Assembly: GCA_965644295.1 (NCBI GenBank) | Contig: CBFFRP010000435.1 | Location: 201,486-265,485 of the forward strand | Length of the DNA stretch: 64,000 nucleotides | From: Paraphysomonas bandaiensis | Taxonomy: Eukaryota > Protista > Chrysophyceae | Direction: 5' to 3' | Part shown: positions 2,479 through 61,155 of the stretch, one piece after another | How positions within the stretch are numbered: position 1 is the first letter of the stretch | Layout of the letters: each line of letters begins with the position of its first letter | Position numbers and translations under genes: made by a program | The notes under the pieces: model-generated | What the model was told of the DNA's origin: nothing | What the model saw: only the letters and a program-made list of their open reading frames with translations | Database searches by the model: none

Positions 2479-3010
2479 ATCTGCAGAGGTGTATATAAGA
2501 CAAGCTCTTTATCGTTGAATAAATCGTTTGTATCTGTTTATCATTGACAGAGACTGTGTAGCAGTTACTCAGTTCGCTATCTTCAATAGCAGTACACAGT
2601 TAATGCAGTGTGTAATAGATGTTATCACTCTCTTTCAGACATCTACTGATAGATGCCTCTCTCCATATATATATATATGTATATATGTGTATGTATGTAT
2701 GTGTATGTATGTATACAGTGCTCTCATCCGCTGTATGTACCTAACATCAAGCTGTAACTGCTACTGTAGATCGTCTGGTAGTCTCCCGTATTCTGTTTTT
2801 GTAGCACTGTGTGTAGGGAAGGAATACCATGGAATACCCTGTATATCTAGGGGGCCCTTATACATATACGTACAGCAGTATTATGGGTATACATACCTAC
2901 CGGTATATGCTCTGTATACCTGTATAGGCATACAGCAGATAGCTCCTGCCTCTTGCTATAGCGAACTTAACTTATAGCCTATCGAGTCACTTATACACCA
3001 GACAAACAAG

Positions 3011-4068: not shown

Positions 4069-4363
4069 AACTGTAGTAATACATAGAGTGTATATACGTT
4101 AGCAATATTATTGAGAGGATGTTTTCTTGTTTTGTGTATATGCACCATTGAATGGAGTGCTGAATGTTAGTTCTGCAATCTTCGTGCTAGAGGACAAAAA
4201 AGGAATATGATAACATCGATCTGTGTTTTTTTTAACAATCTGAGGACTGGAATAACGACTTCTATAACGTTACGTTTTCTACCACTTAGAGCTAAGTTAG
4301 ACAGCTAGTGAACATATGTACTATGCACATTGTCCACTGTTAAATACAATATTAAAAATTATA

Positions 4364-5197: not shown

Positions 5198-5752
5198 GAA
5201 ACTGTACCCAGCAGATCGGTTGATATCGATTCGCTGGATTCACATCTCATAGCAAATGCTGATTGTGATATTTAGAGCCCCCATCTATGACTATATAAGA
5301 CACTGAGTTACTGTATTGTAATATACACACACAGTATATACTGTTGCACGTACACACGTATATCATACGGCCTGTATATCAGAATACCGTATCTACAGTA
5401 TACATACCGTATTCTACCTCACCATCTAAATATTTTTCCAAGAAATTTGTTTCAACTGTTGCCAATATTTGGTTGAAGATATCACAGTTTTGGAGTTCGA
5501 GAGTGATGTAATGTACATATCCTGGTGGTGTGTGTGGTGCTGGGCTACTATAAAAATTGTTCGAGATCATTTTGACCTGATACAAATACCACTCTCCTAT
5601 ATATATATACTGTACTACAGTATCTACAGCTGTGAAGTTCAACACCCTCACCCATATATATATACATACCACAGCACACCAGATCCTCCATACTCCACCC
5701 TCTCACTCCACTATTATGAACTAGGAAAGAACTCACATCATATACTATACAT

Positions 5753-9037: not shown

Positions 9038-9339
9038 ACTATTATCGAGTATCTGTACCTACTGACAAAGTCTCGAATCCCTTTTTATGACGAAATTCAC
9101 TGCTTGCTGATTTGACAATATAGATAACTGTATATTTTTTATTATTCAATTATAACGTGGCGATAATAATATCAAAGTAATATATTTGAAATATATATCT
9201 ACCGTAATGCTGGTCGTTATACTATAGGCAAGTTTACGTAGCTCAATATTTTTAATTCTTAAAAATTTAGGCAATTACATACAAAACTAAGTTAGGAATT
9301 GAAAACAATCGCGAGCATATATCGAACTATGATTATATT

Positions 9340-9618
9340 TGTTGAGTTGTCCTGTTTGAGAGCAATTAAAAGCTGTAGTTCTACGATACTCAGAATTATG
9401 ACCGTTACATATTACATGAAGAATACAGTAGTGATTAACAGTATTAAATGAATTATATAGTAGAGAAACTGAAATATACTGCTGGTATAAGATCTTATGA
9501 AAATGATTAGTAGTTGAGATAACATAAATTAGGCAAATGACAATGAATGATAAGTGAGATTGATTACAATTCATAAGTAAAGCATTGAGTGTATATTACG
9601 TTCAGCTAATAGCTTACA
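9340..9618 (+). mobile_element. Degenerate solo LTR, Copia family related to 43369-43688
   Basis: Starts TGTTGAGTTG..CTGTTTG.GAGCAATTAAAAGCTGTAGTT and shares further blocks (GAATACAGTAGT, AAACTGAAATATACTG) with the Copia 3' LTR. Right end approximate. Confidence 0.7.
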
Positions 9619-9739
9619 CCATCCTAATTGTGTCAAATACATAACCCAACCAACATCAAAATAGTACAAAATCATTAATATCACTCGTTAATCTAGATCA
9701 ATTCTATACAATACAGTAAATCACATTATGAACCCCACC

Positions 9740-12091
9740 CTACGTCAGTATTATTGTCGATATTCCTGACGCAATTGCAGCCAAAGCAAACTCCTTGCAG
9801 GATATACTATGTGACGTTGTAATCGAATGACCAGTCATTTCTGAAATATATATGGTAAAAATGTCGCATACTCAAAGTGTACTATGTGCATAAATACAAA
9901 CCTCTATCAGACGACTCACGGAATTCACATGAAGTTCGGTCAGAATCAATAGATCTCTCGTCAATGCCCAGTGATCGACCAAGGGTACAAGAGACAGGCA
10001 TCTCACCGATAATTAGGAAGTCAGGAGAATATGCAAGTGATTCTTTCACGAATTCTGAGACGACAGATTCGCGATCAGCATAAATACTCTAAATAATATA
10101 CATCAAATCAGCACTAATATACAGTATATGTAACCTTCATATCATAGCCTTGATCTCTATAAGTTTTGCAAAAATCGTATACATGAGAATGATTGACTTT
10201 CTTTTCCGTTTGGGACTCTAGCAGTCCGACGTGAATCAATACCAAGTTATCTCCTTGTTTCGCAAGGCATCTCGCGTACTAACACAATACCTCAATAACA
10301 CAGTAATAGCTATGTGACTAGTGCACTTGCCTTGAACGCATGACAGAGTTCGCCGCTGTTTGTAGGTATGCCTACAACAAAAGTTCTTTTGGACTGATAA
10401 AATTTCTCCTTTGTAAAATGGGGCAAGCACAAAACGGCTAAATCCACACGATGGGCACTTGCATTACGAAGAATGTCTTCCGCTAATGGAATCGACCCAC
10501 TGTGAGTAGTTACAACTAGGGGAAGAGTACCCGAACTACTGTTATACAAGCTATTAATTGTGCGCCTCGTCTCTTTCGCACACTTGTCTTTAGCGAACCG
10601 ATTCGTGAACTCATTTTTATTCGGTTCCGGCGAGTTCAGAAGTGACCAAATATGAGGAAATACTCTTGTATATGTCTCAGATAACAAATTTGGTTGAGAG
10701 GTAGTGCTTGAACGAGTTGCCTGACTGCTTGTCGTACAGCGATCAAAATTGACCGGCCCTGGGTCAACAATGCGTACCGAAAAGAGAGGGGATGATTCCC
10801 GACTAAGAGCGAGAACATTAGTTTTCCACGCTTCTTTAAGCACTTGTGAGCTATACGATATAGTTGTGCGGGGACTACTGAAGCAATCTTTATCGCCTAA
10901 AATCTCATTGTCGTATGGGCACACCGCTCTAGATGGCACAGTACAAATCGATGACATACTGTGTATATAATTGACACTACTGGAGAAACGTCTATGAACA
11001 GTACCTCCTGTACTAAGAGACGAAGCTTCTACTGAAGGATCACATGTTTGACAAATGAGATTAAGATGGTCGTATGCATGGCATAGCGACAGAGCACTTT
11101 GTACAAGACACATGCACGAGCACATCTCCCCGTTCTGTTTACATTGCGACGCACATAACTCTGGCCCTACAATCACAACAACTTGTTTGGAGAAGGTGGT
11201 ACGGTGACTGCGACTGGTGCTTTCTGTAGAATGTTCTCCAGAAGCATCACAACATCTTGAAGTGGCCACGCGTTGACCAGTCTCTTGCATCATAATATCC
11301 GAGCAGCGAACGCCTCTTGATATTCCGTCCACAACACCCAGCACCCACTGCGAAATTTTATGATGCATATCGGTGCGACAAATATAGGAATTGCTACGAA
11401 ATATCTCCCGATCCAATGTTCGCTTCAGAGCCCGCAACATAGATCGTGGGAAGGCTTTATGAGTGAAGACACGGTCTTGGGCGATTGTATTCAGAGCTAC
11501 AACTGTATCTGATGGCATTGTCCGGCATAGAACATCATCGCGAAACACACACCAATCAAACATATGCATACTCATTTTTAGAGTAACTCCATGTTGTACC
11601 ATGTGGGTTTGAAAAGCTCTCCAGAATCTTATTAGTCTAGTCCTTTCTAAAGGTGACAAAGACAAGTGATCCGTGAGCATATTCCCCTCGCCACTCTCCC
11701 AATCACTCCCCTGTGACCCACTGTTCCTTTCAGTGATTTCTATGTCTACTTCGAGTACCTGACGCATTATTACCGCAAAGTAAGATACAAGTATGCCGTA
11801 AAGACACTTCATCGCAGTGTTAACTTTGAGTGGTAAGACATTAAACTTAGACCACTCCTTTATATCACAGGCCTCTATTACACTGATCGGCTCAACAGGA
11901 GTCTCCATCAGCTGTATAGGCTTTATTTTACGTCCTTTCACTCTGCTGGTGAGTGGTTTACCCCCCTCTATCCTCTTAATCCCCACAGTGGGATCTGTTT
12001 CATGAGTGGGCTGTTTATTTATATCATAGAGCCTCTTTAACTCGAAGAAAATCTTCTGACTACGAGTACAGGGGTAGCTATGAATAGGCAT
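9740..12091 (-). CDS. Protein with degenerate tandem universal-stress-protein (USP)-like domains; multi-exon
   Basis: The 593-aa ORF continues through a GC-AG intron (10279-10330) into YARCLAKQGDNLVLIHV. RTFVVGI, LAEDILRNA..DLAVL and PDFLIIG are USP-like. 3' end approximate. Confidence 0.55.
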
Positions 12092-34060: not shown

Positions 34061-34463
34061 ATCTTAATATTATCATGATAATGACTTGTGTACCTGAAGT
34101 TGTCGTGAAAACAGTGTACACAGTCACAACACTTAAGACCAGGCCACAATGATTCGTCGAAGCAGAAGTGTTCTCCTTAGAGAGCACATGGACCCTTTAC
34201 GGTCTCATATGGGCCCACACGAACCCACAGGTGTACTTCAGTGTCTCATAATAGCCCATAGGTGTTCTCTGGTGTACACCTGTGAGATAGTGTATCATAT
34301 TGGTGTAAGTAGTCAAGTTGTAGCGACTATTCAAAACTCTGAACGACACTACAAGAATCCTGACTGATATCACACCATCATATTACTCCTCGCCGTTAGA
34401 CGTATATAGATTAGCAGTTCCATTCTATCTGAAACTCATACATCTGTCTACACTCCTGCAGAA

Positions 34464-34747
34464 ATACATACATACATACATACATACATACATACATACA
34501 TACATACATACATACATACATACATACATACATACATACATACATACATACATACATACATACATACATACATACATACATACATACATACATACATACA
34601 TACATACATACATACATACATACATACATACATACATACATACATACATACATACATACATACATACATACATACATACATACATACATACATACATACA
34701 TACATACATACATACATACATACATACATACATACATACATACATAC
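34464..34747. repeat. Perfect (ATAC)n microsatellite, about 71 units
   Basis: Uninterrupted tetranucleotide repeat. Confidence 0.99.
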
Positions 34748-34881
34748 TGTACATGTACATGCAAGCACCCATCTACTATGTCATTGCACTGTGTTTCATT
34801 GTATATATATCCATTCAATAGAGTAATTACATCACTACCCTCTCCATACATCATTGACAATCTCATCAGAGTATATCCACA

Positions 34882-43368: not shown

Positions 43369-46300
43369 TGTTAGAAATAGACATTTTTAGTAATAAGACC
43401 TTTGTTAACACTTATATGGAATATTATATAATTATAAGAGATACCATACTTCATTCATTGACGTTCACCAACTCTTTCTATCTCTACTACACCAACCATT
43501 TCTAGTACGATCTTACATCGTCACTATCTTGTACAGTCAGTATATTTCAGTTTTATCACTACAATGGCTATCATATTATTGGTTCTCATACTACAGCTAG
43601 CTACTACTGTATTCTTTGAGTAACGGATATAATTCTAATATCTTGGAAACTACAGCTTTTAATTGCTCACAAACAGCAAAACTCAACACTCCCTCTCAAT
43701 TCAAAGCTGTAACACATGGCATAACTGACGGATACGCAACCACCGAAACCGTATAGGACAAACCGGTGGACGTATGGCTCCGACGTTTCAGCTAGCCTCT
43801 CCGTAGACAACACGTTTATGAGCCTCTGTTTCGTTTGTATGAATTCTCTCTGATGACATCCACAGATGACTTCTGATCTTCTCCTAGACATCTCTTTCTA
43901 TGCTTCTCGTATATAACGCCACACAAAGATTTCGTAAATATGTCTGCAGTCTGGTTATCAGTTCCAACGTGATACAATATCGCAGTGTTAAAACGTCCTT
44001 CTGGATCTACATGTTCACGCACCCAGTGGTATTTGATTTCAATGTGTTTTGATCTTTTGTGGAACACTGGATTTAATGCTAGATCACGAGCACTCTGGCT
44101 ATCTAAAAAAAATGGAGTGGGTTCGTACAGTCGAAGTCCCAATTCGGCCAACACCCCCGAAGCCACACCAGTTCTTGCATGCCAGCGTACATAGCTTGGT
44201 ACTCACTCTGCATTGAAGACGTAGACACAGTAACTTGTAAGATTGATTGCCAGGTGAGTGGTCCACCTGCTGCAAACACAATGTATCCAGTTGTCGACCT
44301 TCGTGACACAGTATCGCCTGCCCAGTCAGCGTCTGTGAAAATATGCATGTCAAAGCTCTTACCACTGAACCGAATACCTTTCCGCACAGTACCCCTGATG
44401 TATTGTAACAAATAAGTCATCAACTTGCATGTAGCCTTTGTTGGTTTCGAAGCATATCGTGACAATAGGCCAACAGCATACGCAATATCTGGACGCGTAT
44501 TCATTGATAGATATAGCATGGCACCTAGTAAGCTACGATAGGGATAATTGTCGACTCCCTCTTCCTCCTGAGATGAGTTCTCACTATCAGTGCAATTAAT
44601 CCTGTCCATGGCATCTACAGGTAGTGGGGATTTGCGAACTTTGTTTGAAGGTCCAAGGAATGCTGCATATTTGGTGAGAATTTTTTCAGCGTATGTCGAT
44701 TGGTCAAGTTGAATATAATTCTTGGTCCTTGTAACTCGAACGTTGAGAAAATGCTCTAATTCTCCCATGTCTGACATGTCAAATCTTTCACAAAACCGTT
44801 TCTTGATTTCTGTCAAAATAGTCAGATCCGCACAAGCGATTACTATATCATCAACGTATATGGTTAAGTACACACGATGACCTTTGTACATCATATAATA
44901 TAGACATGGTTCTAAAATGCAGGGTTTGAATCCCAAAGACTTTATAAATCCATGTATGGTCTTCCACCATGAACGTGGAGAACTCCGAAGGCCATATAGT
45001 GAGCGATATAGTTTGAAACAGTGTCCTGGTGGCAACTGAAAATCGGGAGGAGGGTCCATGTACACGTCTCCTTCGATTTTAGCATAACAGAATGCATTCG
45101 ACACGTCAAGTTGATGGATGTGCATACTAAACATGAAAGCAAGGGCAATGATTAGTCTAACCGTAATCGATTTCACCACAGGAGCAAATGTATTTTCGAC
45201 GTCTATACCTGTCCTTTGACCATATCCCAGAGCGACCAGACGAGCTTTATGCTTTTTTATTGATCCATCTTTATTGTATTTTCGTTTGAACACATATCTG
45301 GACTTTAGAGGTCTAACACCAGGTGGCGTCTCAACGACATTAAACACTTCCCGCTTGAATAATGCATTCCGTTCTAATCGTCTAGCTTCCTTCCAATTTG
45401 AAGCTTCAGGACATGTCAATGACTCTTCATACGTCTCAGGCTCTCTATAAGTAGACGAGTTAGACATAAGTGCGCAATCACTCTCATCACACAAGTTAAC
45501 AATCTCCTCGTCATGGAGAAGGTTTACCTCACCCAGGGTGGACACATTAGTCAACACCCTTCGGATTCGCGTACGTTTACCACTGGTCTCCCTTGACTCA
45601 GCATGTACAGTACCACTATTCTCACTTGGCACACAAGAAGGTACATTCTCAAAGACACGATTCGCGCTGACCCCACTCGGTACAGCACCCGCACTACTCT
45701 CCGGCAAAGTACGAAGGGACATTCTCTTCCCTGGAATCTCATCCGCCGTAGACTTATTGGGCGTGTCACCCGAAGCCGGCGTAGATGACGATCCACCTCT
45801 CTTGTCGTCACAAGAACGAGGTTTTGAGTACAGCCTGCGGTTATAGTCACCAGTCAACTCGGCAATATCACGTACGTGAATAGGGACTTTTTCTTCTATC
45901 TGCTCTTTCCCAGCAGTTACTAGCGCCCTAAACGCCACAATTAGTCCTTTTCGCACCACAACTCTCGTAGTCTTGAAGAGAAACCCGTCGTCCACATGAT
46001 ACGAACCAATCAGATGTTTAAACTCTTCAACTGATCGATCTAATGGGTCAGTTTTGACTAAGGCCTCTTCAAGCTCTGCATAGTACTCCTTATCTCTTGG
46101 AGGTATACTTTCATCATACAGAACATGTACTGATACGACTTCTTTGTCACCAAGCCACACACGGGATCCCTTTTTCGTATTGGATAGACCTATGAAATAC
46201 CCAGTCTGCGACTTCTCCTGCCAGTCCTTTCGACGATCACCTTTGGGAATAAGCACATAAGCCTTGCACCCCCAGCGTCGAAATCTCGATAAGTCAGGGA

Positions 46301-48258
46301 CTGAACCTCCTGGGACGCATTCCATTGGAGACATCCAACCTCGATATGTACGTGTAGGCATTCGTCGAACTATCATGCATGCATATACATAAGCATCCCA
46401 CCAAAAAATTACGGGTAATCCTGAGTCCATTAACAGAGCCAGAGTCATTTCTCCCAATGTTCGATTCCTACGCTCAGATACACCATTCATCTCAGGGCTG
46501 TCTGTGGAGCTCCAAGTGATGCTAGTTCCAAACTTGCTCATTAAGTATTGCTGAATGGACTTGTCGATCAACTCAGCCCCCCATCCGAATGGTACTGTAT
46601 CAACCGGTGTGAACCGGGATATGTAGGGAGTTTACGCTCAACCCAGTCCTTCACGCAACTCAACACCTCATTCGCAGACCGTGTCTCCAACGGATATTCC
46701 CAAAACTCCTTGGTGGCTATATCTGATAATGTCAGAACATATTTGTATCCTTGTCTGGATGGGCAATTGAAATATACAGCAATGTCCACAGAAACCTTCT
46801 CAAGGAACTCTGTAGCTTGCAGTTCGTCATCTCTCTTTGCGGTGAATGATTTCCTTGTCATCTTTGATTTTGCGCAAGCTTTACAAATACCTTTCATTTT
46901 TCGTAAACTCTTCTTGCTGAGATGTCGTCGGGTTAATCCGCTCCCGGTAAAAAGTCTGTGTTTAAACGCTTCAATCAGCTTATGTTTGCTGACGTGTCCA
47001 CAGCGCTTGTGTAACATCTCTAACGGATCTTCATGCACCTTGTCGGACAAATATACTTCCTCCAGCATTGTCAAATTTGGAAGATCAAGTATTTCCTGTA
47101 AATTTACATAAGGCATTCCGTTGCTTGAGTAGGTTGCCTCCAATACAGTCTCCCCAGTATCAAGTCGCACAACAGTGGGCTTGTTCAACAACTGCAATCC
47201 ATACCCGTGAGAACGGAGTATTCCTCCAGAGCAGATATTCTTGACTGATCCAGGGCAGATCTTGATGTCAGTCCAATCGCCAAAGCCTCCAGTTTCCTCA
47301 TAGTGTAAACTGGATCCAGCTCTGGTTGTCTGTATATTTCCATCCTCCTTCTTGACCGTATGAAGGAAATTTCTGTCCTTAACAATGAACAGTTTATTAG
47401 AGGCACAGCTGTCTAAATACACGGGTTCATCGGAAGTGTGTAGCACCTCTTCAGAGACACATGAATCATCATGCGGTTCCTCATACATAATCATGTTCAC
47501 AGAGTCCGAATCTTCCTCTTGCTCCTCTCTCCGCAAAAAACGATTCCAATCTGTGCGTTTTGCAGGCTTTTCGTCCAAAAATGGCCGGTTTTTGTCTCCT
47601 TGGGCAGAGTCACTACGTACTTGAGCACGAAATTTGCACTTATACGCACGATGTCTGGTGTCTCCACATACATAGCAGCCATCTGATTTTTTCTTCTCGT
47701 TGTTGTCTCTGCGACTCTCAGATCGATTCCTAGCGCCACGACTCTTTCCCTGCCTTCTTAATTTCGCGATCTTAAGGTCTCTCTTCTTCTTCCAGCACGA
47801 TTTCTGTGAGTGACCCCGTTTGCCACATTTGGGATAGCTGCACACCTCATTTTCATCAGCAGTGGAATTCATGTTTACTTCGTCGGTGCCTTCTTTCGGG
47901 ACACCTTTTGCCTGATCGTATCTCCTGCATATGGTGATCATATCAATAAAGGTTATGTCACCTTGTAGGTAGAGATTGGTGTACAATTGCTCCAAATCGC
48001 TTCGTGTTTCGAGGGCAGTCTGTAACTTCGTTTTTTTTAGCGATGTCAGTGGGTGGTTCCCCCAACTCGGACATTTTTTGACAGATGCCGTTTAGTCGAT
48101 CGATTGCTGCGCACACGAGTTCCCCCGGTAGAATTTTGAATCCTGCAAACTTCTTATTCAATTCAACTAATTCATATTGGATTTCCCCTCGAAACCGAAC
48201 AATTAACCTAGAGATGAGTTCACTCGCTAACTGCTCTTTATCAGGATGGTCCTGCGGG
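43369..48258 (-). mobile_element. Ty1/Copia LTR retrotransposon, 5' part displaced by nested insertions
   Basis: 3' LTR 43369-43688 (TGTTGAG...CTAACA), PPT 43689-43699. Gag zinc knuckles, protease YLDSCAS, HHCC (LHKRCGH..CKAC), integrase D-D-E, RT KARLVALG/YVDD, RNase H DADWAG/KHIEIK. Confidence 0.95.
43816..48258 (-). CDS. Copia gag-pol polyprotein, broken by three single-base homopolymer frameshifts
   Basis: ORFs 47958-48161, 46568-47995, 44103-46571 and 43816-44166 join once the runs at ~48035, ~46580 and ~44156 are corrected by one base. Confidence 0.85.
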
Positions 48259-48556
48259 TGTAGTTGTTCTTAAGAACAACGTATGCTCAAGCAAAAACAA
48301 CACTGATCTATAACGTTTTAAAAAGATTTTAAGTGCACGCCAGCGGGCTGCTACACTGTTAAGCTCACCAGCGGGTGATGCTCCTCAACTCAGACGCAAA
48401 CCGCGAAAGAATTTAAATAAATCGTTATTTAAAACGTGTAATAGAAAAGTGAGTAACACTGCTATACAACTCTACAGTAACACACACATACAACATCATG
48501 TTCAGCATTTCACTTCAGCACACAACACACCAGATCAGAAGTATTTTATCCGGTAC
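48259..48556 (-). mobile_element. Truncated LTR (298 bp) of element family B, inserted in Copia gag
   Basis: Matches the left 298 bp of the LTRs at 54013 and 59011 with about 4 differences. Confidence 0.93.
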
Positions 48557-49537
48557 ATAGATGTAACCACACAGTCTCCTAAACTCCTTCTCCGCATCCT
48601 CATATAATCTAGGATTTACGGGTCTTGCCTTCGGCTTGATCCTAGGAGGCAAATTCTCAGCGAACTTGATGTTCAACGGATCCACTCCTTTTATACCTTC
48701 CCACCGCTCTGGAACAAATACCTCTACTCCCTTAGTCCTCAATAACTCCAGCACCGGTCGCGCTGCTGAGAACTCTGGAGACACGTGCTCACCAAACATA
48801 TCCTCGAACTCGCTCAAAGCTTCCTCTCTAGTCTTTCCAAGAAAACTTGAGGCAAATCCGAACTGCGAAGGGTCCGGAACATCCAATTCTTCAGGTGCTA
48901 CCTCCCTACTACTGTCACACCACGGCTGCAATAATTCTTCAACCGCATTCAACAACAAATCATCCTCGGTAACATCGTCCTCACGCCTTTTAATAAAACT
49001 TACTTCTGATTCAATTCGTTCAATAGTCCTTCCTTTAAGCATAAATAGAAAATAATCCCATAGATCCTTAACGATAGCCGGAAGTCCAATGATAATATCG
49101 TTGCTACCCATATCAGCAACAATGAAATCCCCGTCATATAACACGAACTCTCCCTTGGAGTCTTCTCTCTCAAACCTCAATTTTAATTTCACTACAAAAC
49201 TACACTTCATTCTCGACGTTTTATCGGCAAATCCTATAACTGTTTCTTTTTTTATGACTTTGTTTTCACACACATGATTTCTAAACGTCTCAAACAAATC
49301 CTTGGAAATGAAGTTAGATGTTAGGGCTCCAGTGTCGAACAATATTCCACGCACAGATATTATATAGTTATCATCACATACAATGCTTCCCCCAGAATGA
49401 GCCAATGTCAAGTCTTTTCGTTCTCGCGTATTACAGACATTCATCAAATTTCTGAGGAAAACTCGACTAACAGTCTCAGGATCATTCAAACCGTACAATA
49501 TTTCTTCGTGATCCTGCGAACCATTAGCCTCGCACAT
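48557..49537 (-). CDS. Gypsy aspartic protease and pre-RT region
   Basis: LFDTGA, DIIIGLP, PKARPVNP..EKEFRRLCGYIYV, then cut by the family-B LTR. Confidence 0.85.
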
Positions 49538-49540
49538 TTG

Positions 49541-51010
49541 TCAAGTCACTCCACCAGGCCTCGGCAAAATCTTTCGCGGCCCTTTGGAATCATCTGCCAT
49601 CATCTGAGACAGCTTCTTCATCATCCATTTCCGGGTTTCCGTTGCAACTGCTCCATTATGACCCTGGACATGCTTACATTCCTTCCCTTTGTAGCAGTTC
49701 CCATACAACGCATACGCAACGCAACCACGGGTTGGATTAACAGTCTTCTCTAGGTTCATCACCTGTTCTATAGCTTCCTTATCAGACTCTGGTTCGCCGA
49801 GCAACATCTCCTCAACCTCATTCTCGAAATCATCATCTGACATCCCGTCATCCTTGACCACAACTATCGGGTCAACCTCCTTGTCATCTAAATCACTGTA
49901 GAAATCATCCTCAACTCGGTCCGCAAACTGCACGTTGTTTAAAGATTTCGGTTTCTCCTTTGCAACGTATCCATTGTCCCGATTCCTCGAACTCCTTTGA
50001 ATTTGCTTCCTACTGAAATCGGACCCTTCATAAGGCACCAATCTGATGTTCTTGGACGCCTCATAATGCTCACTCGCCTTGGAAACGTATGTATCCAGAA
50101 ACTCTTCAACATTACCATAATTAGTATCCGTCACCCTTGGAATCTCAGCCAGAACTCGTTTGTTGTAAGACTCGTCGATCAACTCCAAAAATACTTGAGC
50201 CGATCCAAACTCTTTTCCTCCAACCGGCGGACACTTAGTACTATTGGCCTCCATCATGATAGTAAACGTACGCATAAAAATACTCTTTCGCTTCAAAATC
50301 TCTTGAAAAAACAGCTCATGTGTATTCGGCCGCACTGATTTCCAATCCAGTGGCTTAAAATATCTCAGCGCGTATCGCAAAGTCTCAATGAACTCCACTT
50401 TGGACAACACCTTGGTCTCCTTAGCCATCATCTCACAGAATTTCTGAGCACTCAACTTAACAAACATTTTATCCGTCAAGCTATTGTTGAACATAAGCAG
50501 GTTCCGAACACGCCTGCTAACTATCTGGGCTGGCTCAAGCTTAATCCCATTGATCTGTTCATATTCAAACCATTGGATGATAAACTTTGTAAAATCACTA
50601 AGCTCCATCGAATCCAGAAAAATATGCTTATGGGATGGCTTTTCAACATTGATGATGACATGCTTTGGAACCTCCATTCCCTCTGAAGACTCAGCCTCCC
50701 TCATGAATACAGATGTCCTTCGCTCTTTCTTCTTGCCTTTGTCGTCGGCAGCCCTGCCACTCTCTCTGGTATGTCCCTGCTGCTCTTCACGCTGGTCACG
50801 GATGGCCTCATCTACTTCCTTCTGAGCTTCCTCCAGCTCATTAACTAAAACTTCTTCATTAATAGACATTCTGGACTCCAGATTATCTACCCTACTGGCA
50901 GTTGCTACACACAACTTAGTGACGTTCTCCAAATTGAGAGCAATTCCCCGTAACATTTCCTTAACTTCATCTAACTCAGATGAACCAACAGGACCCTCCG
51001 AATCAGACAT
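49541..51010 (-). CDS. Gypsy Gag-like protein with coiled coil and C-terminal CCCH-type finger
   Basis: 489-aa ORF immediately upstream of and in frame with the protease; C-x8-C-x5-C-x5-H (CVAYALYGNCYKGKECKHVQGH). Confidence 0.8.
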   Translation of the reverse strand: MSDSEGPVGSSELDEVKEMLRGIALNLENVTKLCVATASRVDNLESRMSINEEVLVNELEEAQKEVDEAIRDQREEQQGHTRESGRAADDKGKKKERRTSVFMREAESSEGMEVPKHVIINVEKPSHKHIFLDSMELSDFTKFIIQWFEYEQINGIKLEPAQIVSRRVRNLLMFNNSLTDKMFVKLSAQKFCEMMAKETKVLSKVEFIETLRYALRYFKPLDWKSVRPNTHELFFQEILKRKSIFMRTFTIMMEANSTKCPPVGGKEFGSAQVFLELIDESYNKRVLAEIPRVTDTNYGNVEEFLDTYVSKASEHYEASKNIRLVPYEGSDFSRKQIQRSSRNRDNGYVAKEKPKSLNNVQFADRVEDDFYSDLDDKEVDPIVVVKDDGMSDDDFENEVEEMLLGEPESDKEAIEQVMNLEKTVNPTRGCVAYALYGNCYKGKECKHVQGHNGAVATETRKWMMKKLSQMMADDSKGPRKILPRPGGVT

Positions 51011-51763
51011 TTCGATATATATCTATAAACTACAATAATGATATCTTCACTTACGTGTTTTACCGTGAGTAAATTTACTATGAACAACTCAGGTCTTGCA
51101 ACCTAAGATCACTGAAAAGATATGAAATGGTTGTTTATCGAAACAACAAAACAGAAAGCTATAATAATAACTCTTTAAGAAACCAACAGCCAGAAACACA
51201 AGCTCCCCTGTATCCTGCAATCTAAAGCTCCCAATAGACAGATCAGTCAACCAACTATGTTAATTTCATAGAGAATTATTATTAAAACTAAGTTACAAGC
51301 GAAACAAAAGACAGACCCCTCTAGTCTAAAGACTCCTCCTCATACACAGGACATTGAATGCAACCACAACCGTACAATGTGCTCATACATGTACTACACT
51401 ACATACGATTCTTATCCTACATCGTTTATAGTCAAAAACTCCCTGAAATACGCCTAAATAGGTCCTTTCCAAAAAACTCCGATTTTTGAGTCCAAAAACC
51501 CAAAAATCCCCAATTTTTTGAGAATTGCAGAAAATCGCCGATTTTCGAGCCACAAACACCCAAAAATGACAATATTCGATTCCACAAAAATTGCAAGCAC
51601 ATTTCATGACAACGTGAAATACACAATCGCCAACTCATGCATAATACCGACAAAATGCAATCGGGTTCAAAAGCTTACAATCGAACGGTTAAATATCATT
51701 TCCTTGCAAGAGTGTGTACTTTAGACTGGACCATACAAATACACTCATATTCAGATCACTAAC

Positions 51764-52561
51764 ATGCCCATGACACCTCTGCATCTGCGTCCAATGGCAC
51801 CTTACGAATTCCTCCCCATTCCGGAGAAAATCAACGGAGAGTGGCAATGGAGGAACATACGTATAGTTTACACCAAAACATTGGGAAAACATCTGCAAAT
51901 ACTGAATCCCCGCAAAGGCTTGCTGATACCATACGTAGGGACATTAATCACGGAATCTCAGTATCTGACTAGGCTCAAGAATCCATCACGACGACCTAGT
52001 CCCGACTACCTGCTGGATATAGATGGTGAGATGTTCCTTGATGGCAATCCTGACCATATGACGAACGCACCAGGCTGCTACCCGGCATCGTACCTAAATG
52101 AGCCAGCAGAAGGTACCAATGCCTTGTTCAACTGCCAAATAGTCCTACTCCGGAAATCGGATTATCCGGACATGCCCGAATACCTATATATGCCCGAATG
52201 TGACATAGTCCCCTTCGTCGAATGGATGACCGATATTCCGCGCTCCATGAGAGGTCAATGGCAAACCGGATGGCTGGTATATTCCTCGAACAAGAAGTCC
52301 CACAAAACTGCTCGTAAACCATATACACCCAAAGAGTTCATCTCCGCCAACTGTGGACCTTCCTGGAAAACCCACTGGACAAGTAACTATGTATCCCATG
52401 AGGCCAAACAGCTGAACGAGCGGGCCTATGAGGAAAGATCCTCTGCACCTTCAGCTACTAAGCGTAAGAGCCTAAGACCCTTTCCTCCGAACCAGACTGG
52501 AATCGTTCGTTCCCACCGCCGGAGCCTTCGGAAATATAAAAGCCGCGTCCACGAGGGTTGA
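51764..52561 (+). CDS. Divergent SET-domain-like protein within retroelement A1 (antisense to gag)
   Basis: LGKHL..KGLLIPYVGTLI, YLL..FLDG, ASYLNEP..NC and TDI..WLVY are ordered like SET motifs GxG/EYxG, IDA, RFINH..PNC and RDI..ELxxDY. Basic C-terminus (KRKSLR, RRSLRK). Confidence 0.6.
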   Translation: MPMTPLHLRPMAPYEFLPIPEKINGEWQWRNIRIVYTKTLGKHLQILNPRKGLLIPYVGTLITESQYLTRLKNPSRRPSPDYLLDIDGEMFLDGNPDHMTNAPGCYPASYLNEPAEGTNALFNCQIVLLRKSDYPDMPEYLYMPECDIVPFVEWMTDIPRSMRGQWQTGWLVYSSNKKSHKTARKPYTPKEFISANCGPSWKTHWTSNYVSHEAKQLNERAYEERSSAPSATKRKSLRPFPPNQTGIVRSHRRSLRKYKSRVHEG

Positions 52562-52706
52562 AAATCCGTTTGATTGTTTTGCCGTATAACTAATAAACTA
52601 TTATTTCTAAAATCTTATTTCCATATCTTGCATTAGCCTGCTACTAGATTATATTATTTATGATATTAAACTTACCAAGGGTGTTATAAAAGCCCACGGC
52701 TTTACA

Positions 52707-54012
52707 ATGCGTCTGAGAGGGTATATTTACGTAAAAAGTTCATCACCCTGGGCTTCATGTCTCACAGTGGCCCCTAAGGCGACTAAGCCGTTTATCAGAC
52801 TATGTGGTGACTATCGAATCATCAATAAATATATGGAGATCCCACATTACTATATTCCGAATGTGCGTCATCAGCTGGATCGTATTATTGAGTATGAAAT
52901 CTTCCTAGACATTGATCTAACGAACGCATTCCACCAGATACCCGTGACTGAGCAAACCTCGGCCAAACTATCGATTCAGACCCCATGGGGTCAATTCCAG
53001 CCGTTATATGTTCCTGAGGGTATAGGACCGGGCAGTGGAAAGCTTCAACAAACTATTATGGAATTATTTGGTGATTTTGACTGGGCTATATGTCTGTTCG
53101 ACAACGTTTTAATATTGGCAAAGGATTATGATGATGCGTATAGGAAGCTCGACTTGTTCCTTGATCGTTGCATTGAACACAGCGTTGTATTGAAATTTGC
53201 TAAGACATGGTTAGGGAAAAGAGAAGTTCATTTTTTTGGTTACAATTGCAGACATCATTCGTATGAGTTGACCAATGATAGGAAGGAAGCTATTTTGAAA
53301 ATTCCTTTTCCGGAGAGTGGGAATCGTCAGAAAAAGGTGAGGTCAATGCTGGGTATGGGTGTGTTCTTTGCGCCATTTGTTGAGAACTACAAGGACAAGG
53401 TGAAGCATTTGACGGACCTTACAAAGCAAGATTTTAATTGGGACGAAACCACGTGGAAAATAGATTATAGGCAGGAATGGGAGGACTATAAAACTGGACT
53501 TCAAGAGGCTTGTTCAGTCTTTTACCCAGACTACGAATTGGAGTGGTTCTTGCGTACGGATGCTAGTGAGTTCGGTATTGGAGCAGTCCTATTCCAAGTA
53601 AAACGCCTCGAAAATGGTGAAGTTTTATACCAAGTTATAGCCATGTGTTCAAAGAAATTTTCACCTGAAGCTATGAGATGGTCAACAATTGAGCAAGAAG
53701 GATATGCCATCTTTTATGCGGTGAGACATTTTGCGTATTACCTGATTGGGAAACACTTCATCGTCCAGACAGACCATAACAATCTAAGATGGATGGAGGC
53801 GTCAGAAGTGCCGAAAATAGTCAGATGGAGAGTTTATCTACAATCGTTTGATTTTGTTGTACAACATATCAGTGGAAGAGAAAATACTGTGGCCGACGCC
53901 CTATCGCGTTTATTTATGATCTCCATGGATGATTCGGATCATGATAGAACAATGGGTGAAGAGGATAGTGATGATGATTGGACATTCCACGCCCTCATGA
54001 ACGTATTCGACC
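52707..54012 (+). CDS. Gypsy A2 pol, RT + RNase H segment
   Basis: SPWAS, RLCGDYR, DLTNAFHQI, LFDN in place of YxDD, TDASEFGIGAVL, EQE, TDHNNL, NTVADALSR. Confidence 0.93.
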
Positions 54013-57000
54013 TGTAGTTGTTCTTAAGAACAACGTATGCTCAAGCAAAAACAACACTGATCTACAACGTTTTAAAAAGATTTTAAGTGCACGCCAGCGG
54101 GCTGCTACACTGTTGAACTCACCAGCGGGTGATGTTCCTCAACTCAGACGCAAACCGCGAAAGAATTTATATAAATCGTTATTTAAAACGTGTAATAGAA
54201 AAGTGAGTAACACTGCTATACAACTCTACAGTAACACACACACACAACATCATGTTCAGCATTTCACTTCAGCACACAACACACCAGATCAGAAGTATTT
54301 TATCCGGTACGTATGTACAGCTTCAACACTCCGTGTATACACTGAAAGAGTAGAAACTGAATATGTAACTGAAAACTGAAAATACAAAAACACTCTGTAC
54401 GTGTTAGAGAGTACAACAGAAGAGTAACATATAATACTACTACCAACGCAGAAAATAACCAGTACTGCGTTACACTACCCTCTTTCCCCCCAGCTGGAGA
54501 AATTAGATTGTGAATACAGACTGTGATTCATGTATGCAAATACTTAAATCAGCCATACTAGATAGCGTCATTCTAAGTATAAACAAACAAAATCAGATTT
54601 AAACAGATATTGAGAATAAACTAGATAGACAAGGTAGTATGATATAATAGAAATAAAAGAATATTGCAAATATTATCATATAATATAATAGAAGAATAAA
54701 ACCTGTTTACAAGAGTATATCAGGAAAACTCTTGCAAAACTCCGCATCGACAAGCACCTGAACGCCATCAATCTGCTGTTTCCGCATTCGTAGTCGTTGT
54801 TGTTTAGCAAGAAAAACTTAACATGGCAGTAACAACATCCTCGTATCGATAACAGATTTCACTCATTTAAATAGCACACCGCAGTAAAAGTAGACGATAC
54901 TGAATTCTCAAATACGGTATAAGATATATGGATTAACTTTTGCCTTATATTGTATCCAATAACCAAATGAGAAATTCGTAGAAGAATTGGTCATTTAAGT
55001 AACACTTTCCCACATTTCAATAAAATTAGAGACATGCATCCGATCATCATAAACTTCACGCAATACCAACTTTAAGAAATGCGCTTCAACTACTCGTATA
55101 CTCGCTCAATTCACACAATGTTTTTTGACACAATCGAATATCCACGTTGAAATAGTAATGAAAAAAGAACACACTAGTATTCATCGAGATATAAGAAATT
55201 TACCATCAACAACGCATTGAGATACTCCGAGTCATAACAATAATATCACCAGGAAAATATATTTCACCATGATGAATTGTCCATCAATCAATTACAGAGT
55301 AAACTTTAGAAGTACAAAAAGTAACTCCGTTAAGAACTCATTGCAACAACATATCAATTTCATGAGAAAGAATCAAGTCAAAAGACAGACTCCCTTATGA
55401 AATATAGATACTTCCCACTGTGTATGTAAAACCAAAGAGACACTTTCATCAACTCATTGACCCTCGTAACGACATTTCAAACATCTTATTCGCACTAACC
55501 AGAACCAGATTTTAGAAATGAATAACATTTGGGTAACATAAGACGATCAAATATGATTTATTTCACCTTGGCAACTCGACTAGTTAATCTTCACGTATAT
55601 GGAAATTTTCCCATTGAAATACAAATAACTTGAGAATAACTCAGACCACATGGAATATCTAAGTTGAAAGTTCAAAATTTCCAAGATACAGATCAAAAAA
55701 TTGTAAACCAGAACACAATTACATAACCAGGAATACAAGTATAAAGTGAATCAAAGGAACAATAACCTTAGAAAGAATCTGGACAAATATCCACCGAATA
55801 CTCGTAACAACGAACGTAATTGAACAATAATACAGTCAAGTTTTAACCTTGTTGTAACCAGACAACATATGTCACAGCAACGCTATATAACTCTCATTTC
55901 ACTCATCATAAATATTGAACCGAGTTCACAAAATAACTTGATAACTCTCTTATTCCGAATGCAAATCCATAATATCAACAACCAGAACTACACAAACTCC
56001 ATAACACATACTTAAAATTCAGCTTCCTGAATTTAATATGAACTCCTCAACTTTCGGAAATTCAACTCAAACTTTAACTCTGACAACATTCTGACACCAA
56101 ACCTTCACAAGTTGAAAGTAAACTCAAAATGCTCTCAAAACATTACAAAAGTAAGTTCGCTCAAACAACACCATAATATGTTGATTCAGGCACTTGGACT
56201 CAACATTGTTGGCACATTTGTAACTTTGAATGTAAAACTGTGTATCAAGATCAGCAATCACTCCTCACTAAAGAAAAAAGCACCAATAATACTTTTCATC
56301 TTTATAATCACACACTTCCTTAATTCCATAGTGTTAAAAGCCTCAAACCTCAAATTTCAAACATGAACAACAAGTTCACACATTCCGAATGTCAAACAAT
56401 CTGATACAGTTTATTTGAACAATTGAACATGTTCCACTTTTAGAATACCGAGAATACTTGAAACCTCTCAAATATTCTTAAAGAATAATTGCACCATACG
56501 ATTGCCTCAAATTTCTTGTATCACCATTGGAATAAGACACACATAACTGAAGCTTCTAAGTGTCATATATAACCAAATTTGTATAACAAGAAGATACAAA
56601 AGAAATCCACCATCATCATCATACCAATTTCTGTCTAGGTCTAGAAAACTCAACTTTGACAAGAAGTCATGAATTCGTATATGATAAAATCAATCCATCC
56701 TCACGGTTTAGAACGAAAACATTTAATTCCACTGTGTAGATTTAACCCATACATTACCAGAATATTTCGATCTCAATATCAATGAATAATCATCAACACC
56801 ATAAACCAAAACTTATAGCGAGAATCATTTAATCGTTCACATAATCACTGATGAAATAAGCTCTGACAAGAATAATAGTATAATCTGAAAGTTTATGAAA
56901 ACATTCGATATAACACTCCATAATTGCAACTTGATATCCATCTCAGGAAAACTCTTGTCAAACTTAATCCTAATTTGATCATTGTAAATATCACCAAATC

Positions 57001-59472
57001 AATCAATAACTACCCATAGAATTCAAACATGTCACTACATAAAACAACTTTTAACCCACGTAAGCATTTTCTGAACGCTGCTACTCGTAATACAAGACAT
57101 CAGACTCAAGAACTCAAAACTCTTCTCCCAATCAAATACCAATCAATTCCGTCTGAATATATACTAAGATAGTACACTGGTCTTATATTAGTAACCATAG
57201 GTTAGTATCAATTTTCCTCAAAATAACACTAGAATATTATTGAAGATATTGCCATTCCATTGAAAACAATTCATTTGGAACCATTCCATCCATTTGAATT
57301 AGATGACACTTTGGTCAAACACTAAGTTAAATCTCAACAAGGCTTCTCAATTATTGAATCTCAGGGATGATCGATAGAATTTCTCCGATTAACCAAAAAT
57401 TAGAAAACTAATCTCATCAACCTCATCAACGCAAATCAATGAACCTCATACAAGATATGCAGTTGAATACCCCAAAACAGAAATATATATCCACCATATA
57501 GCAAAATCTTGATAACTTCCCTGAATATTGAATCACATCCTTTCTAGATTCAAACTTCCATTCGAACCAAATTTTAAATTCAAAACCAACAACAGTAGGT
57601 AAATCAAACTGATTCATTGAACTTCATCCCTTTCAAAGTTCTAGGGACTATGAAACCATCTTACAACTTTCAACAACACAACTTCAAAGAAACTTTGATG
57701 TTCTCAAACTGTTCACTCACTCGCAGACATTAATTATTGAAATACCTCAGCATAACAATCGCAACTTTTCGTAAACAAGTTGATAGGTTTAACCACTCAC
57801 TCTCACTGCAACTCGTTAACTTGCTAGCCTTTGGTAGTATAAATCACCTTCATTTCGTTTAGGCAATAGATTGAACAACAGCTGAATAATATCTTGAATC
57901 AAGATATTGGTTAATTTGCCCAACTCAAGGTTACACTCAAAATACTTCAACACCATTATTTTTTCCAACAATACCGCATTATCAAGTGTATAACAATATG
58001 ATATAAATAAATAAAACATGATGAATATTGCATTATAATAAATTGTCTTGAAATAAAACATGCTCGCTGGAATTGGAAATAGAATTATAGAAAGTACAAG
58101 GGCGGGCCTGGCCCATGTTCCTCAATTGGCACCAGCTTTTGCATCAAGAGTTGCAATTTCTTGTCCTTCACAAGCAACTGACAAACAACGCATGCTGCAT
58201 ACTGCTTCGACAAGAAAACCAAACAATCTCTCATAAGTTTTCCCGTAACAGAATGATACCTTAACAGCATCAAAGAATTCAACACTGCATTAGATACTGA
58301 AAAAGGTACAACTGACATGCGCTCGAATACATCGGTAGCATCATCGGCAGTAGTCTCTTTTCCAAAGAAAATTGGAACATCATTCTCAGCATCAATAACA
58401 TCATCTTGAATAACTACTTGGAAATCAACAACCGAATCAAACGTCTCAAGTGAATTATTAGACTGCACACCATACTGCACAACTGAATCAACTAAATCAC
58501 TGACAACTTTCTGCACCGCATAACACTCATTATCAGTAAACTCCGAATCCTCACTGGCAATATCAGTAGACAACTCCTTAATTTCACCATCCACCTCAAC
58601 AACAACAATTGCATCACTGATAACAACATCTCGCACTGACACAACAGACTCAAGCTTAGTAAAATTAGAATCCACAACGCCAACACTTAATGACTGCTGC
58701 ACTGGTATTTCTGACAACTGATCAACTTGTATAATTTCTGAATTAGCTCTCGATGACCTTCCAGATCTCCTCTGATTGATCTCCTCAAGACTCAGTTGAA
58801 CATGCTCATTAAACACCTGCTGCTGACGAAAACGCTGTTCTATATCATCGAAACGCTGCTCCATATACTCACGTTGCTCACGCATATACTGCATCAGGTC
58901 TTCTAGAGTAAGCTCTGTCTTCGCATCTCCTTCTGCAGGCTCCATGACTCTTATAACAGTTCAAAGGGCTCAATAACACAATAAATGTTCTTATCAACTA
59001 GTAATATTACTGTAGTTGTTCTTAAGAACAACGTATGCTCAAGCAAAAACAACACTGATCTACAACGTTTTAAAAAGATTTTAAGTGCACGCCAGCGGGC
59101 TGCTACACTGTTGAACTCACCAGCGGGTGATGCTCCTCAACTCAGACGCAAACCGCGAAAGAATTTAAATAAATCGTTATTTAAAACGTGTAATAGAAAA
59201 GTGAGTAACACTGCTATACAACTCTACAGTAACACACACACACAACATCATGTTCAGCATTTCACTTCAGCACACAACACACCAGATCAGAAGTATTTTA
59301 TCCGGTACGTATGTACAGCTTCAACACTCCGTGTATACACTGAAAGAGTAGAAACTGAATATGTAACTGAAAACTGAAAATACAAAAACACTCTGTACGT
59401 GTTAGAGAGTACAACAGAAGAGTAACATATAATACTACTACCAACGCAGAAAATAACCAGTACTGCGTTACA
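54013..59472 (-). mobile_element. Non-autonomous LTR retroelement B (LARD-like), 5460 bp
   Basis: 462-bp LTRs 54013-54474 and 59011-59472 (TG...CA, about 2 differences), 4-bp TSD GACC, PPT GGGGGAAAGAGGGTAG at 54475-54490, no pol. Confidence 0.95.
58085..58945 (-). CDS. Gag-like/coiled-coil ORF of element B
   Basis: 286-aa ORF just downstream of the 5' LTR, N-terminal coiled coil (LEDLMQYMREQREYMEQRFDDIEQRF). Confidence 0.6.
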   Translation of the reverse strand: MEPAEGDAKTELTLEDLMQYMREQREYMEQRFDDIEQRFRQQQVFNEHVQLSLEEINQRRSGRSSRANSEIIQVDQLSEIPVQQSLSVGVVDSNFTKLESVVSVRDVVISDAIVVVEVDGEIKELSTDIASEDSEFTDNECYAVQKVVSDLVDSVVQYGVQSNNSLETFDSVVDFQVVIQDDVIDAENDVPIFFGKETTADDATDVFERMSVVPFSVSNAVLNSLMLLRYHSVTGKLMRDCLVFLSKQYAACVVCQLLVKDKKLQLLMQKLVPIEEHGPGPPLYFL

Positions 59473-61155
59473 GACCTAACTGATATATCAGAGACAGCCC
59501 CTGAGCCTGTATCTAGATTAAGGGCCCAGGAACTCATGGAGGAAGTACATAATGCCCAATCAGGCCACTGGGGAGCTAAAGAGATGTGGAATCGGCTGAA
59601 TAAACTATGTCCTGGGCATCAGATTCCATATAAAGAAATAGCAGACTTTGTGAGTTCGTGTGCGTGCTGTGAGAAAACACGGAGAGAGCGTAAGAACCGT
59701 TTAATTAAGATCCCTAGAACACTGAAACCCCCACATGCGAGAAGTGTCATTGGTATAGATGCTGTGAAGATAACACCAGCAGGGAAGAACGGTGAATCAC
59801 ATATCCTGGTCATTGTTAATTTGTTTAGTAAACATGCATTTCTCAGAGCGATAGTAGGCGTTACAGCGAAAAATTTAGCTGCTTCTGTGTGGATATATTG
59901 GAGCAATTTTGGACATACTGACATGATTATCTCAGATTTGGGTACTGACCTTACCTCGAAGTTATTCGCAGAGTTAGTTCAGCTCATGGGAATGCGCCAT
60001 GTGTTTAGCATTGCAGATAAACATGCTAACGGTACAGAGAGGCCAATAAAGGAAGTGGTGCGGCATTTACGAGCACTAGTATTTGACACAAGGATCCAAG
60101 ATATTTTCGATGATGTTACAAAGATTCCTTCCGTACAATACATTCTCAATGATCATGTGTCCTCCGAGACTGGATTTACGCCGTTTGAGCTTGTCTTTGG
60201 ATCGGTGGACGCGGTATATAAGGATCTTTTGAAAGATTGTGAGGGTGAACCGTCCCATATGCTGCTAAAACAGCTAAATGAGAATCTAACAGTGCTCCGA
60301 GAGGCTTCGAAGAAATTTCAAGATCAGTTGGTTGAAGAAAGAGCGAGTCAAGCGAGACTTATGCCCCAAAATATGTATGCGCCAGGAGATTTTGTCTTGT
60401 TTGATGCTGGTCCAAAACCACATCCTAAACTGGCGTGTCGTCATAAGGGTCCAATGCAAGTTGTCCATCAATACAAAAACGATGTGGATTGTAGGAATCT
60501 GATAAGTGGAGCAATAAAAAAGTTTTCGGTTGAGGATCTTGAGCTATTCTATGGTTCGGCAGAGGAGGCTTTCAATGCTGCAATGCGAGATCAGGAGCAG
60601 TTCATGGTCGATAAGATTCTTGGATACAAGGGAGACTGCAGAAAGAGGACTTCGATGATTTTCAAGGTTAAGTATGCTGATGGAGAAGTTCTTGATATTC
60701 CGTATACCCCTGATATTCTATGTGAGGCGTACTATGACTTCTGCCAGAGTAAGCCTTTCCTTTTTCACTTATCCTTGGACACGGATATGGCCACAAGATT
60801 CATACGCGACAAGCGCAAGGAAAACATTACCTCAGTATCACCGGGAGATACAGTATATGTGGATTTGAGATTCTTTGGGGACCTTTTTTATGAATCCCTA
60901 CAGCTTCCAGACTGGGAAACTTCCAGCTATGTTGTTCCTTTTACCTACCTCCGTTGGTATCACAAGGGCGGGAGTCGCAAGAAAATTACCGTTCGATTTG
61001 ACCTCAACAAGCAATTATATGGCTTTGATAATTACATGGTTTATGCGTGGGGTCGTCAATGGGAATTCGATGAATCCAGCATGATTCTCGTAGATGATAC
61101 GATCACCAAGCACCACCCCGAAATCCTCGCTGTGGATGGCCCAACCCAGGAGTAG
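59473..61155 (+). CDS. Gypsy A2 pol, integrase + chromodomain segment
   Basis: HHCC (VHNAQSGH..CACC), D-D-E (GIDA, SDLG, TERPI), GPY/F-like HKGPMQV, chromodomain-like FMVDKILGYKG..FKVKYADG. In frame with 52707-54012 once element B is removed. Confidence 0.92.
   Translation, partial: DLTDISETAPEPVSRLRAQELMEEVHNAQSGHWGAKEMWNRLNKLCPGHQIPYKEIADFVSSCACCEKTRRERKNRLIKIPRTLKPPHARSVIGIDAVKITPAGKNGESHILVIVNLFSKHAFLRAIVGVTAKNLAASVWIYWSNFGHTDMIISDLGTDLTSKLFAELVQLMGMRHVFSIADKHANGTERPIKEVVRHLRALVFDTRIQDIFDDVTKIPSVQYILNDHVSSETGFTPFELVFGSVDAVYKDLLKDCEGEPSHMLLKQLNENLTVLREASKKFQDQLVEERASQARLMPQNMYAPGDFVLFDAGPKPHPKLACRHKGPMQVVHQYKNDVDCRNLISGAIKKFSVEDLELFYGSAEEAFNAAMRDQEQFMVDKILGYKGDCRKRTSMIFKVKYADGEVLDIPYTPDILCEAYYDFCQSKPFLFHLSLDTDMATRFIRDKRKENITSVSPGDTVYVDLRFFGDLFYESLQLPDWETSSYVVPFTYLRWYHKGGSRKKITVRFDLNKQLYGFDNYMVYAWGRQWEFDESSMILVDDTITKHHPEILAVDGPTQE

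Follow-up and report, generated by a model that had tools for sequence, protein, structure and literature searches.

Sequence, structural and comparative analyses of the 64-kb stretch of DNA presented above (the window) indicated that ORFX, an intact 265-aa ORF, is probably a selected SET-fold accessory gene that is carried in the long terminal repeat (LTR) of a chromovirus-like Ty3/gypsy retrotransposon, is dispensable in cis and acts in trans. In the ORF list of the window, ORFX begins with an ATG and contains no internal stops. It lies wholly inside the 5' LTR of a minus-strand Ty3/gypsy element (element A) and, as the earlier note on this DNA had already recognized, is antisense to gag. 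The features of element A are as follows.

51764..52561, plus strand: ORFX, encoding a divergent SET-fold protein whose C-terminal tail is basic and NLS-like; LTR positions 146-943 from the U3 end
51079..52706, minus strand: 5' LTR of gypsy element A, 1628 nt, TGTAAAG...TTCATA in element orientation
52592..52597, plus strand: candidate poly(A) signal AATAAA within the LTR, 31 nt past the ORFX stop
51011..51078, minus strand: leader/primer-binding region between LTR and gag, 68 nt, with matches only in 5' LTR copies of related elements
49541..51010, minus strand: gag of element A, 489 aa, without a Pfam match
48558..49537, minus strand: protease region and start of the reverse transcriptase (RT) of element A, within ORF 48515-49537

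The LTR terminus at 52706, which had been putative, was confirmed by seven copies, namely those of the window, of contigs C368 and C93, of both LTRs on C244, and of L043 and L044, all of which have sequence in common up to ...GGCTTTACA and diverge directly beyond it (C-numbers denote contigs of the 62.5-Mb, 669-contig assembly in which the genome searches were carried out; L043 is an ENA contig from another sample). The other LTR end was placed at 51079, where the sequence shared by the copies begins, and the LTR thus comprises the interval between these two ends. ORFX lies in its U3-side two thirds, with 145 nt between its end and the U3-side terminus. When the genome was searched at the DNA level with 51011-52706, two classes of matches were obtained, starting either at query base 1 (5' LTRs with the 68-nt leader) or at query base 68/69 (3' or solo LTRs). 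The copy on C93 is a solo LTR, flanked on both sides by the 4-bp target-site duplication ATTC.

Pfam searches of ORFX, gag and the protease region of element A gave no matches for any of the three, and the pol of element A ends at about 48555-48558, where it is cut by the LTR of another element. The family assignment was made with relatives of element A. An intact relative on C244, whose gag is 97-99% identical to that of element A, has two LTRs 6.7 kb apart, gag, protease (PR)-RT-RNase H and integrase (IN), and the pol of L043 includes RT, RNase H and IN zinc domains. The relatives thus display gag followed by PR-RT-RNase H-IN, direct LTRs and 4-bp target-site duplications, as in Ty3/gypsy elements, the window copy being truncated after PR. 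LTR length in the family is 1.2-1.6 kb.

In the central LTR (51400-51860 of the window), CCAAAAA-like motifs are repeated, and the contig depth of this region was 50-100 times that of gag in three sequencing runs, which indicates that the motif or this part of the LTR is far more abundant than the element. The runs that matched contained only the other allele, as contigs that carry no strand information and possibly derive from DNA. The AATAAA downstream of ORFX may possibly serve as a poly(A) signal for an antisense mRNA.

The identity of the encoded protein was established with profiles. ORFX itself matched no Pfam family at E<=1 and falls below the PF00856 gathering score, and a single-sequence search of the PDB with ORFX returned only NSD2, at E 0.68. 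A search of 1.84 billion representative proteins with a profile built from seven close sequences retrieved 60 at E<=1e-3; 13 of the 60 pass Pfam SET and four match PRDM2_PR, while the closer relatives match neither. A second profile, built only from 27 members that are negative for Pfam SET, matched nothing but SET enzymes in the PDB (16 sequences), the best being NSD2 (E 6e-4) and ASH1L (E 2e-3), with Clr4 also among them. The AF2 model of ORFX based on the 60-sequence alignment had a pLDDT of 86 and a pTM of 0.76, but since Pfam-positive SET relatives were part of that alignment, it does not constitute evidence separate from theirs. The best 50 matches of a Foldseek search of this model against the PDB were all SET/PR domains, and the clusters among the matches of a protein-atlas search were SET clusters only. 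The SET-like fold that the earlier note had proposed was thereby shown for ORFX (PF00856 superfamily, whose fold is a beta-sheet core with a knot-like C-terminal segment) by profile matches and by the predicted model.

Several searches gave results that were set aside. When the seven-sequence profile was run against the PDB, NSD2 was gone, and the remaining matches (E 0.3-2), to a ribosomal protein and to an HIV Rev construct, were taken as due to chance. An AF2 run on the seven-sequence alignment was unusable (pLDDT 33), and an amidase identity for ORFX, pointed to by the protein-atlas features (clusters at 0.87), was rejected because this score is below the trust level.

The order of motifs read earlier is real: LGKHL, GLLIPYVG, LDGNP, SYLNEP..FNC and TGWLVYS align with the conserved columns of the 60-member family, whose consensus is KGxG(L/V)F, GLLIPYGG, (D/N)(A/G)NP, NEA...YNC and GEELLxxYG. 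In motif I (GxG), ORFX retains the first Gly but has His in place of the second. In motif III, Asn112 is kept and the His is replaced by Glu. The resulting NE is found in 60 of 60 family members, including the Pfam-positive SET proteins, and is thus a trait of the subfamily rather than a sign of decay. In motif IV, Tyr173, which is nearly invariant in the family, is kept, but the ORFX clade has QTGW instead of EEL. The replacements of NH by NE and of EL by TG had been noticed earlier and regarded as possible marks of altered or lost catalysis; both are present, NE throughout the family.

These replacements bear on the alternative that ORFX is a pseudoenzyme or decoy, which would keep the SET fold without methyl transfer and bind a histone tail or a silencing factor, or compete with a SET enzyme of the host. 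Throughout the ORFX clade, GxG lacks its second Gly and the EEL is lost, and the altered motif QWQTGWLVYS is invariant in six clade members, which suggests constraint on a new function. In addition, the near-invariant Asn112 is replaced by Asp in the sister allele P0001, and this change fits, together with the losses in motifs I and IV, a relaxed or altered function. However, the window copy retains the catalytic Tyr173 and Asn112-Glu113, and PR-domain SET proteins that lack the NH motif can be active. A decoy role is rather unlikely, though the least so of the alternatives considered here, and catalytic activity of ORFX is itself considered somewhat less likely than not.

ORFX contains no pre-SET or post-SET zinc modules and instead has a conserved C-terminal extension of about 90 aa ending in the basic tail, which the earlier note had called NLS-like and which is conserved across the family. 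The tail (52430-52558, ORFX residues ~205-265) consists of PPNxTG followed by an Arg/Lys-rich run. Its weak alignment (E 1.7) to the arginine-rich motif of the HIV Rev construct probably reflects no more than compositional likeness, though it would fit nuclear targeting or RNA binding.

A search of the genome with the ORFX protein gave 74 matches, five of them near full length: the window copy, which is intact, and those on C368 (99% identity), C93 (90%), C235 (53%) and C12 (48%). In the C368 copy, another insertion has cut off the 5' end, and the C93 copy has one stop, so the window copy is the only intact LTR-borne ORFX in this genome. The other matches are remnants of 85-107 aa with frames of about 100 aa, many of them with stops, which cover only the first 85-89 residues of ORFX. 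Pairs of remnants lie about 6.7 kb apart, which places them in both LTRs of full elements. The U5-side ~790 nt of the window LTR (51079-51865) are 95-99% identical in DNA to dozens of other LTRs, and the common LTR is 97-99% identical to it only over this part and the last 56 nt; the ORFX part of the window LTR is a diverged cassette. Since no LTR version has multiplied in this genome as much as the one with the decayed remnant, ORFX is dispensable in cis.

Further LTR-borne versions were found outside this assembly. L043 contains gag, pol and a 5' LTR with the intact P0001 allele, which is 92% identical to ORFX in amino acids, at the locus that is occupied by the C93 solo LTR in this genome. 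Two Tara Oceans contigs (L062 and L063) carry the P0004 version, which is 69% identical and breaks off at 156 aa; the U5 part of the LTR around it is 95% identical to that of the window. Two Logan contigs (L055 and L056) carry the P0003 version, which is intact, 268 aa long and 50-52% identical, together with an identical 29-nt LTR terminus. At least four diverged LTR-borne versions (the window version, P0001 in L043 and L044, P0004 and P0003) thus share the LTR terminus or the U5 part, and a one-off capture, which according to the earlier note would have spoken against its reading, is ruled out. The possibility that L055 represents the same locus as the C244 LTR was rejected, since only 8 flanking bases agree. 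Metagenome and viral contigs were also scanned with the alignment of the close family, without a match.

Between the LTR-borne versions, synonymous differences are saturated (pS 0.64-0.86) and non-synonymous differences are much lower (pN 0.19-0.32). The dN/dS ratio is 0.39 for the closest alleles, those of the window and L043 (16 synonymous and 22 non-synonymous changes; one-sided binomial p 0.006), and <=0.15 elsewhere where it is measurable. The same two alleles differ by 4.8% in the ORF part, by 1.3% in the flanking LTR and by 0.27% in gag (4 of 1470 nt). This unequal divergence indicates that the LTRs are mosaics of a conserved U5-side part and old, diverged ORF cassettes. These sequence comparisons support the view that ORFX is an old, selected component of its LTR lineage. 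As to the check proposed earlier, whether the ORF is fixed in the element, it occurs in independent, diverged copies of the LTR with dN/dS<1 but is not universal, as most copies are decayed remnants.

Relatives of ORFX also exist outside LTRs. Two single-copy paralogues were found in the genome, on C235 and C12. The C235 paralogue is almost identical to a Paraphysomonas transcript in the MMETSP1103 transcriptome and has as neighbors genes for a CTP synthase, a WD40 protein, a TIR protein, a PARP-domain protein and HSP20; no LTR terminus was found near it. The C12 paralogue is intact from residue 23 onward, and the dN/dS between the two is 0.13. In the phylogenetic tree, the Paraphysomonas clade is well supported, and within it the P0003 LTR type, the LTR group of the window type and the C235 and C12 paralogues form an unresolved three-way split. 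By these sequences, the direction between paralogues and LTR copies could be either, i.e., capture by the LTR or domestication from it. In addition, a 171-nt repeat that is present in at least 40 copies with 94-95% identity begins 7 nt past the stop of the C235 paralogue (L004:2302-2472).

Neither RT nor gag was found in the contexts of the distant relatives P0007, P0010 and P0027, and a link to LTRs was seen only within the Paraphysomonas clade. A divergent 669-aa neighbor of P0007 was considered as a gag and rejected, as it shows no similarity to gag. P0027 is located on JGI lake metagenome contigs (L052 and L053) that contain 10 densely packed, intron-free genes on both strands in 8.9 kb, including genes for an IBR protein, a metallophosphatase and a fatty-acid hydroxylase, an arrangement suggestive of a large DNA virus and not of a protist chromosome.

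It might be argued from the intact cellular paralogues among ordinary genes, one of which matches a transcript, that a small cellular SET gene was merely picked up by the LTR as a passenger, of no use to the element, and that the window copy is young and undecayed. That a single intact LTR copy remains in the genome, and that the family multiplied although most of its LTRs hold decayed remnants, would be in line with this explanation. It is made improbable by the presence of at least three long-diverged LTR-borne versions with intact frames, in which synonymous sites are saturated and non-synonymous change is much lower, by the dN/dS of 0.39 between the two LTR alleles, and by a second gypsy family that keeps a SET ORF at the same place and in the same orientation in both LTRs, even where pol is missing.

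This second family was one of several combinations of retroelements and SET genes revealed by a Pfam SET search of the genome, which gave 126 matches, mostly multi-copy. Its representative on C599 (L057, C599:2500-12499) is a complete gypsy element with a Pfam-positive antisense SET ORF in both LTRs (1147-1836 and 9044-9781), whose stop lies ~148 nt from the U3 end, the same geometry as in ORFX. In a relative on C338 (L058, C338:267500-277499), both LTR SET ORFs are intact and the interior lacks pol. ORFX and the L057 SET show no BLAST similarity to each other, and their hhalign match is weak (E 0.086), though in register on every motif; the pol of the ORFX family and that of the L057 family are ~50% identical. 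In a non-LTR retrotransposon (LINE) on C440 (L060, C440:5000-14999; frame L060:2-8236, minus strand), the SET domain occupies aa 1092-1196 of a polyprotein, followed by AP-endonuclease and RT, and ~45 near-identical matches to this type of SET occur genome-wide. On C119 (L061, C119:137000-146999, ORF 693-5258), a gypsy pol of 1521 aa contains a SET domain between RNase H and integrase, and at least eight copies of this type with open frames of 1526 aa were found. The canonical His is missing in all four retroelement SETs (ORFX, L057, L060 and L061).

Element A is truncated before its integrase in the window. The C-terminal tail of the integrase was studied in an intact relative of element A and in element B, a different gypsy family in the window that is 67% identical in amino acids to the element A family. 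The features of element B are as follows.

52707..54011, plus strand: RT/RNase H of element B, within ORF 52707-54017, starting directly at the end of the LTR of element A
59482..61155, plus strand: integrase of element B, with a chromodomain-like stretch at ~60601-60745

A chromodomain-like integrase tail (about 76 aa), claimed in the earlier note, is present in both elements, and its language-model features place it with Chromo clusters: 85 of the 100 nearest named clusters are Chromo (score 0.92, with 184-188 shared features). It has no Pfam Chromo match, and no PDB sequence match was found. The chromodomain-like nature of the tail is accordingly a lead given by language-model features only. 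No SET ORF was found in the window downstream of the integrase of element B.

A SET fold and an integrase tail with Chromo-like features in one family could form a targeting circuit, as the earlier note had suggested, in which ORFX would write a methyl-lysine mark that the chromodomain of the element's own integrase reads, steering new copies into the marked chromatin. Nested copies could be regarded in this light: the window copy lies in a gypsy RT, the C368 copy next to copia fragments, the L063 copy in a copia gag-integrase region and the C244 copy beside copia. However, chromoviruses without a SET gene of their own commonly nest in repeats, the integrase tail has no Pfam Chromo match, and copies that lack ORFX multiplied too, so that such a circuit is quite improbable. 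The broader proposal that retroelements of this chrysophyte lineage routinely carry a chromatin writer (with SET domains acquired in at least four separate architectures), with an LTR-borne SET and an integrase chromodomain forming a write-and-read circuit for an integration niche or an anti-silencing shield, is likewise speculative and has a low probability.

The favored explanation remains that ORFX serves a chromovirus-like Ty3/gypsy family as an accessory gene, placed antisense and entirely within the LTR. As the whole frame is inside the LTR, each LTR, solo LTRs included, carries a complete ORFX, and the LTR possibly also supplies the start and poly(A) signals of the gene. ORFX encodes a divergent member of a distinct SET subfamily, with NE for NH, the conserved C-terminal extension and a basic tail that may target the protein to the nucleus, where it most likely acts in trans. 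It could be a lysine methyltransferase, or a SET-derived binder of a lysine-bearing substrate such as histones or another nuclear protein. Its action may alter how host chromatin handles the element, through silencing or the choice of integration sites.

The fold is shared with the SET lysine methyltransferases SETD8/SET8, NSD1-3, ASH1L and the PR domains of PRDM proteins, from which ORFX differs in having NE for NH, altered GxG and EEL motifs and no Pfam match. The best viral structural matches to ORFX were SET-like proteins of phaeoviruses (FirrV-1-J1, EsV-1-28 and that of Feldmannia species virus), with Foldseek E values of 8e-6 to 8e-5. The 215-247 aligned columns cover nearly the whole protein at an identity of only 14-16%. 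The phaeoviruses also have stramenopile hosts, but their SET genes are encoded by large DNA viruses and not by a retrotransposon LTR. With chromoviruses, the element A family shares the order PR-RT-RNase H-IN and an IN in which a chromodomain-like stretch comes after the zinc-binding and core domains; it differs in that this putative chromodomain is too divergent for Pfam and in its long (1.2-1.6 kb), protein-coding LTR.

Retroviral LTRs can also contribute to coding or antisense genes. The sag gene of MMTV lies in U3 in sense orientation, and HBZ of HTLV-1 is expressed antisense from the 3' LTR and coded mostly outside it; neither is a SET gene. Like ORFX, for which antisense transcription is predicted, these genes use LTR sequence or antisense LTR transcription, whereas the ORFX frame lies wholly antisense inside a protist LTR. 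A proto-Helentron of Phytophthora infestans carries a Clr4-like SET ORF (smart00317, E 3e-24) and is, as the ORFX element, a SET-bearing transposable element of a stramenopile, but it is a rolling-circle DNA transposon and its canonical SET is located outside the terminal repeat (PMC4067079). Additional or antisense ORFs are known in the Retand lineage of plant gypsy elements (PMC11963269), and gypsy elements of orchids gained an AlkB-type demethylase domain (PMC9289625). These accessory ORFs are located inside pol or in the interval from pol to the 3' LTR, whereas ORFX is within the LTR, and none of them is a SET gene (PMC11963269, PMC9289625). In the literature searched, no SET gene was found to have been described from within an LTR, the nearest case being the Phytophthora SET ORF in the rolling-circle transposon.

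Transposable elements are usually regarded as targets of host histone methylation. The element described here has a gene belonging to the very class of enzymes with which hosts silence such elements, suggesting that a mobile element may bring its own chromatin-modifying tool, and owing to the location of ORFX inside the LTR, each insertion or solo LTR leaves a complete copy of the gene. A genome with several independent combinations of retroelements and SET genes, and with cellular paralogues, offers a natural system for the manipulation of chromatin marks by transposable elements, for domestication and for the coexistence of coding and LTR functions in one sequence.

The surroundings of element A are themselves rich in mobile elements. 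Because the RT of element B starts directly at the end of the LTR of element A, element A was apparently inserted into element B. The pol of element B is interrupted between RNase H and integrase by an LTR-flanked insertion of ~5-5.5 kb. Three direct copies of a 300-nt LTR-like repeat, 97-100% identical, are located at 48258-48557, 54012-54311 and 59010-59309. The latter two flank a low-GC, ORF-poor segment inside the pol of element B, which is probably a non-autonomous LTR element, and the first borders a Ty1/copia element at 44103-47995 (minus strand) that has gag-pre-integrase, integrase core and RVT_2 domains in two ORFs of 475 and 822 aa. The pol of element A is cut directly after the codons for RLCGYIYV, and the RT fragment of element B starts with RLRGYIYV. 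The two breaks (48555-48558 and 52707) thus lie within ~23 nt of the same pol position, which could be due to chance or to a preferred insertion site. Elsewhere in the window, a tandem array with an 8-nt period and at least 36 copies (34373-34800) overlaps the ORF at 34411-34866, and an ORF of 1094 aa on the plus strand (5753-9037) encodes a CotH kinase domain (E 6e-23), which is unusual among nuclear genes of protists.
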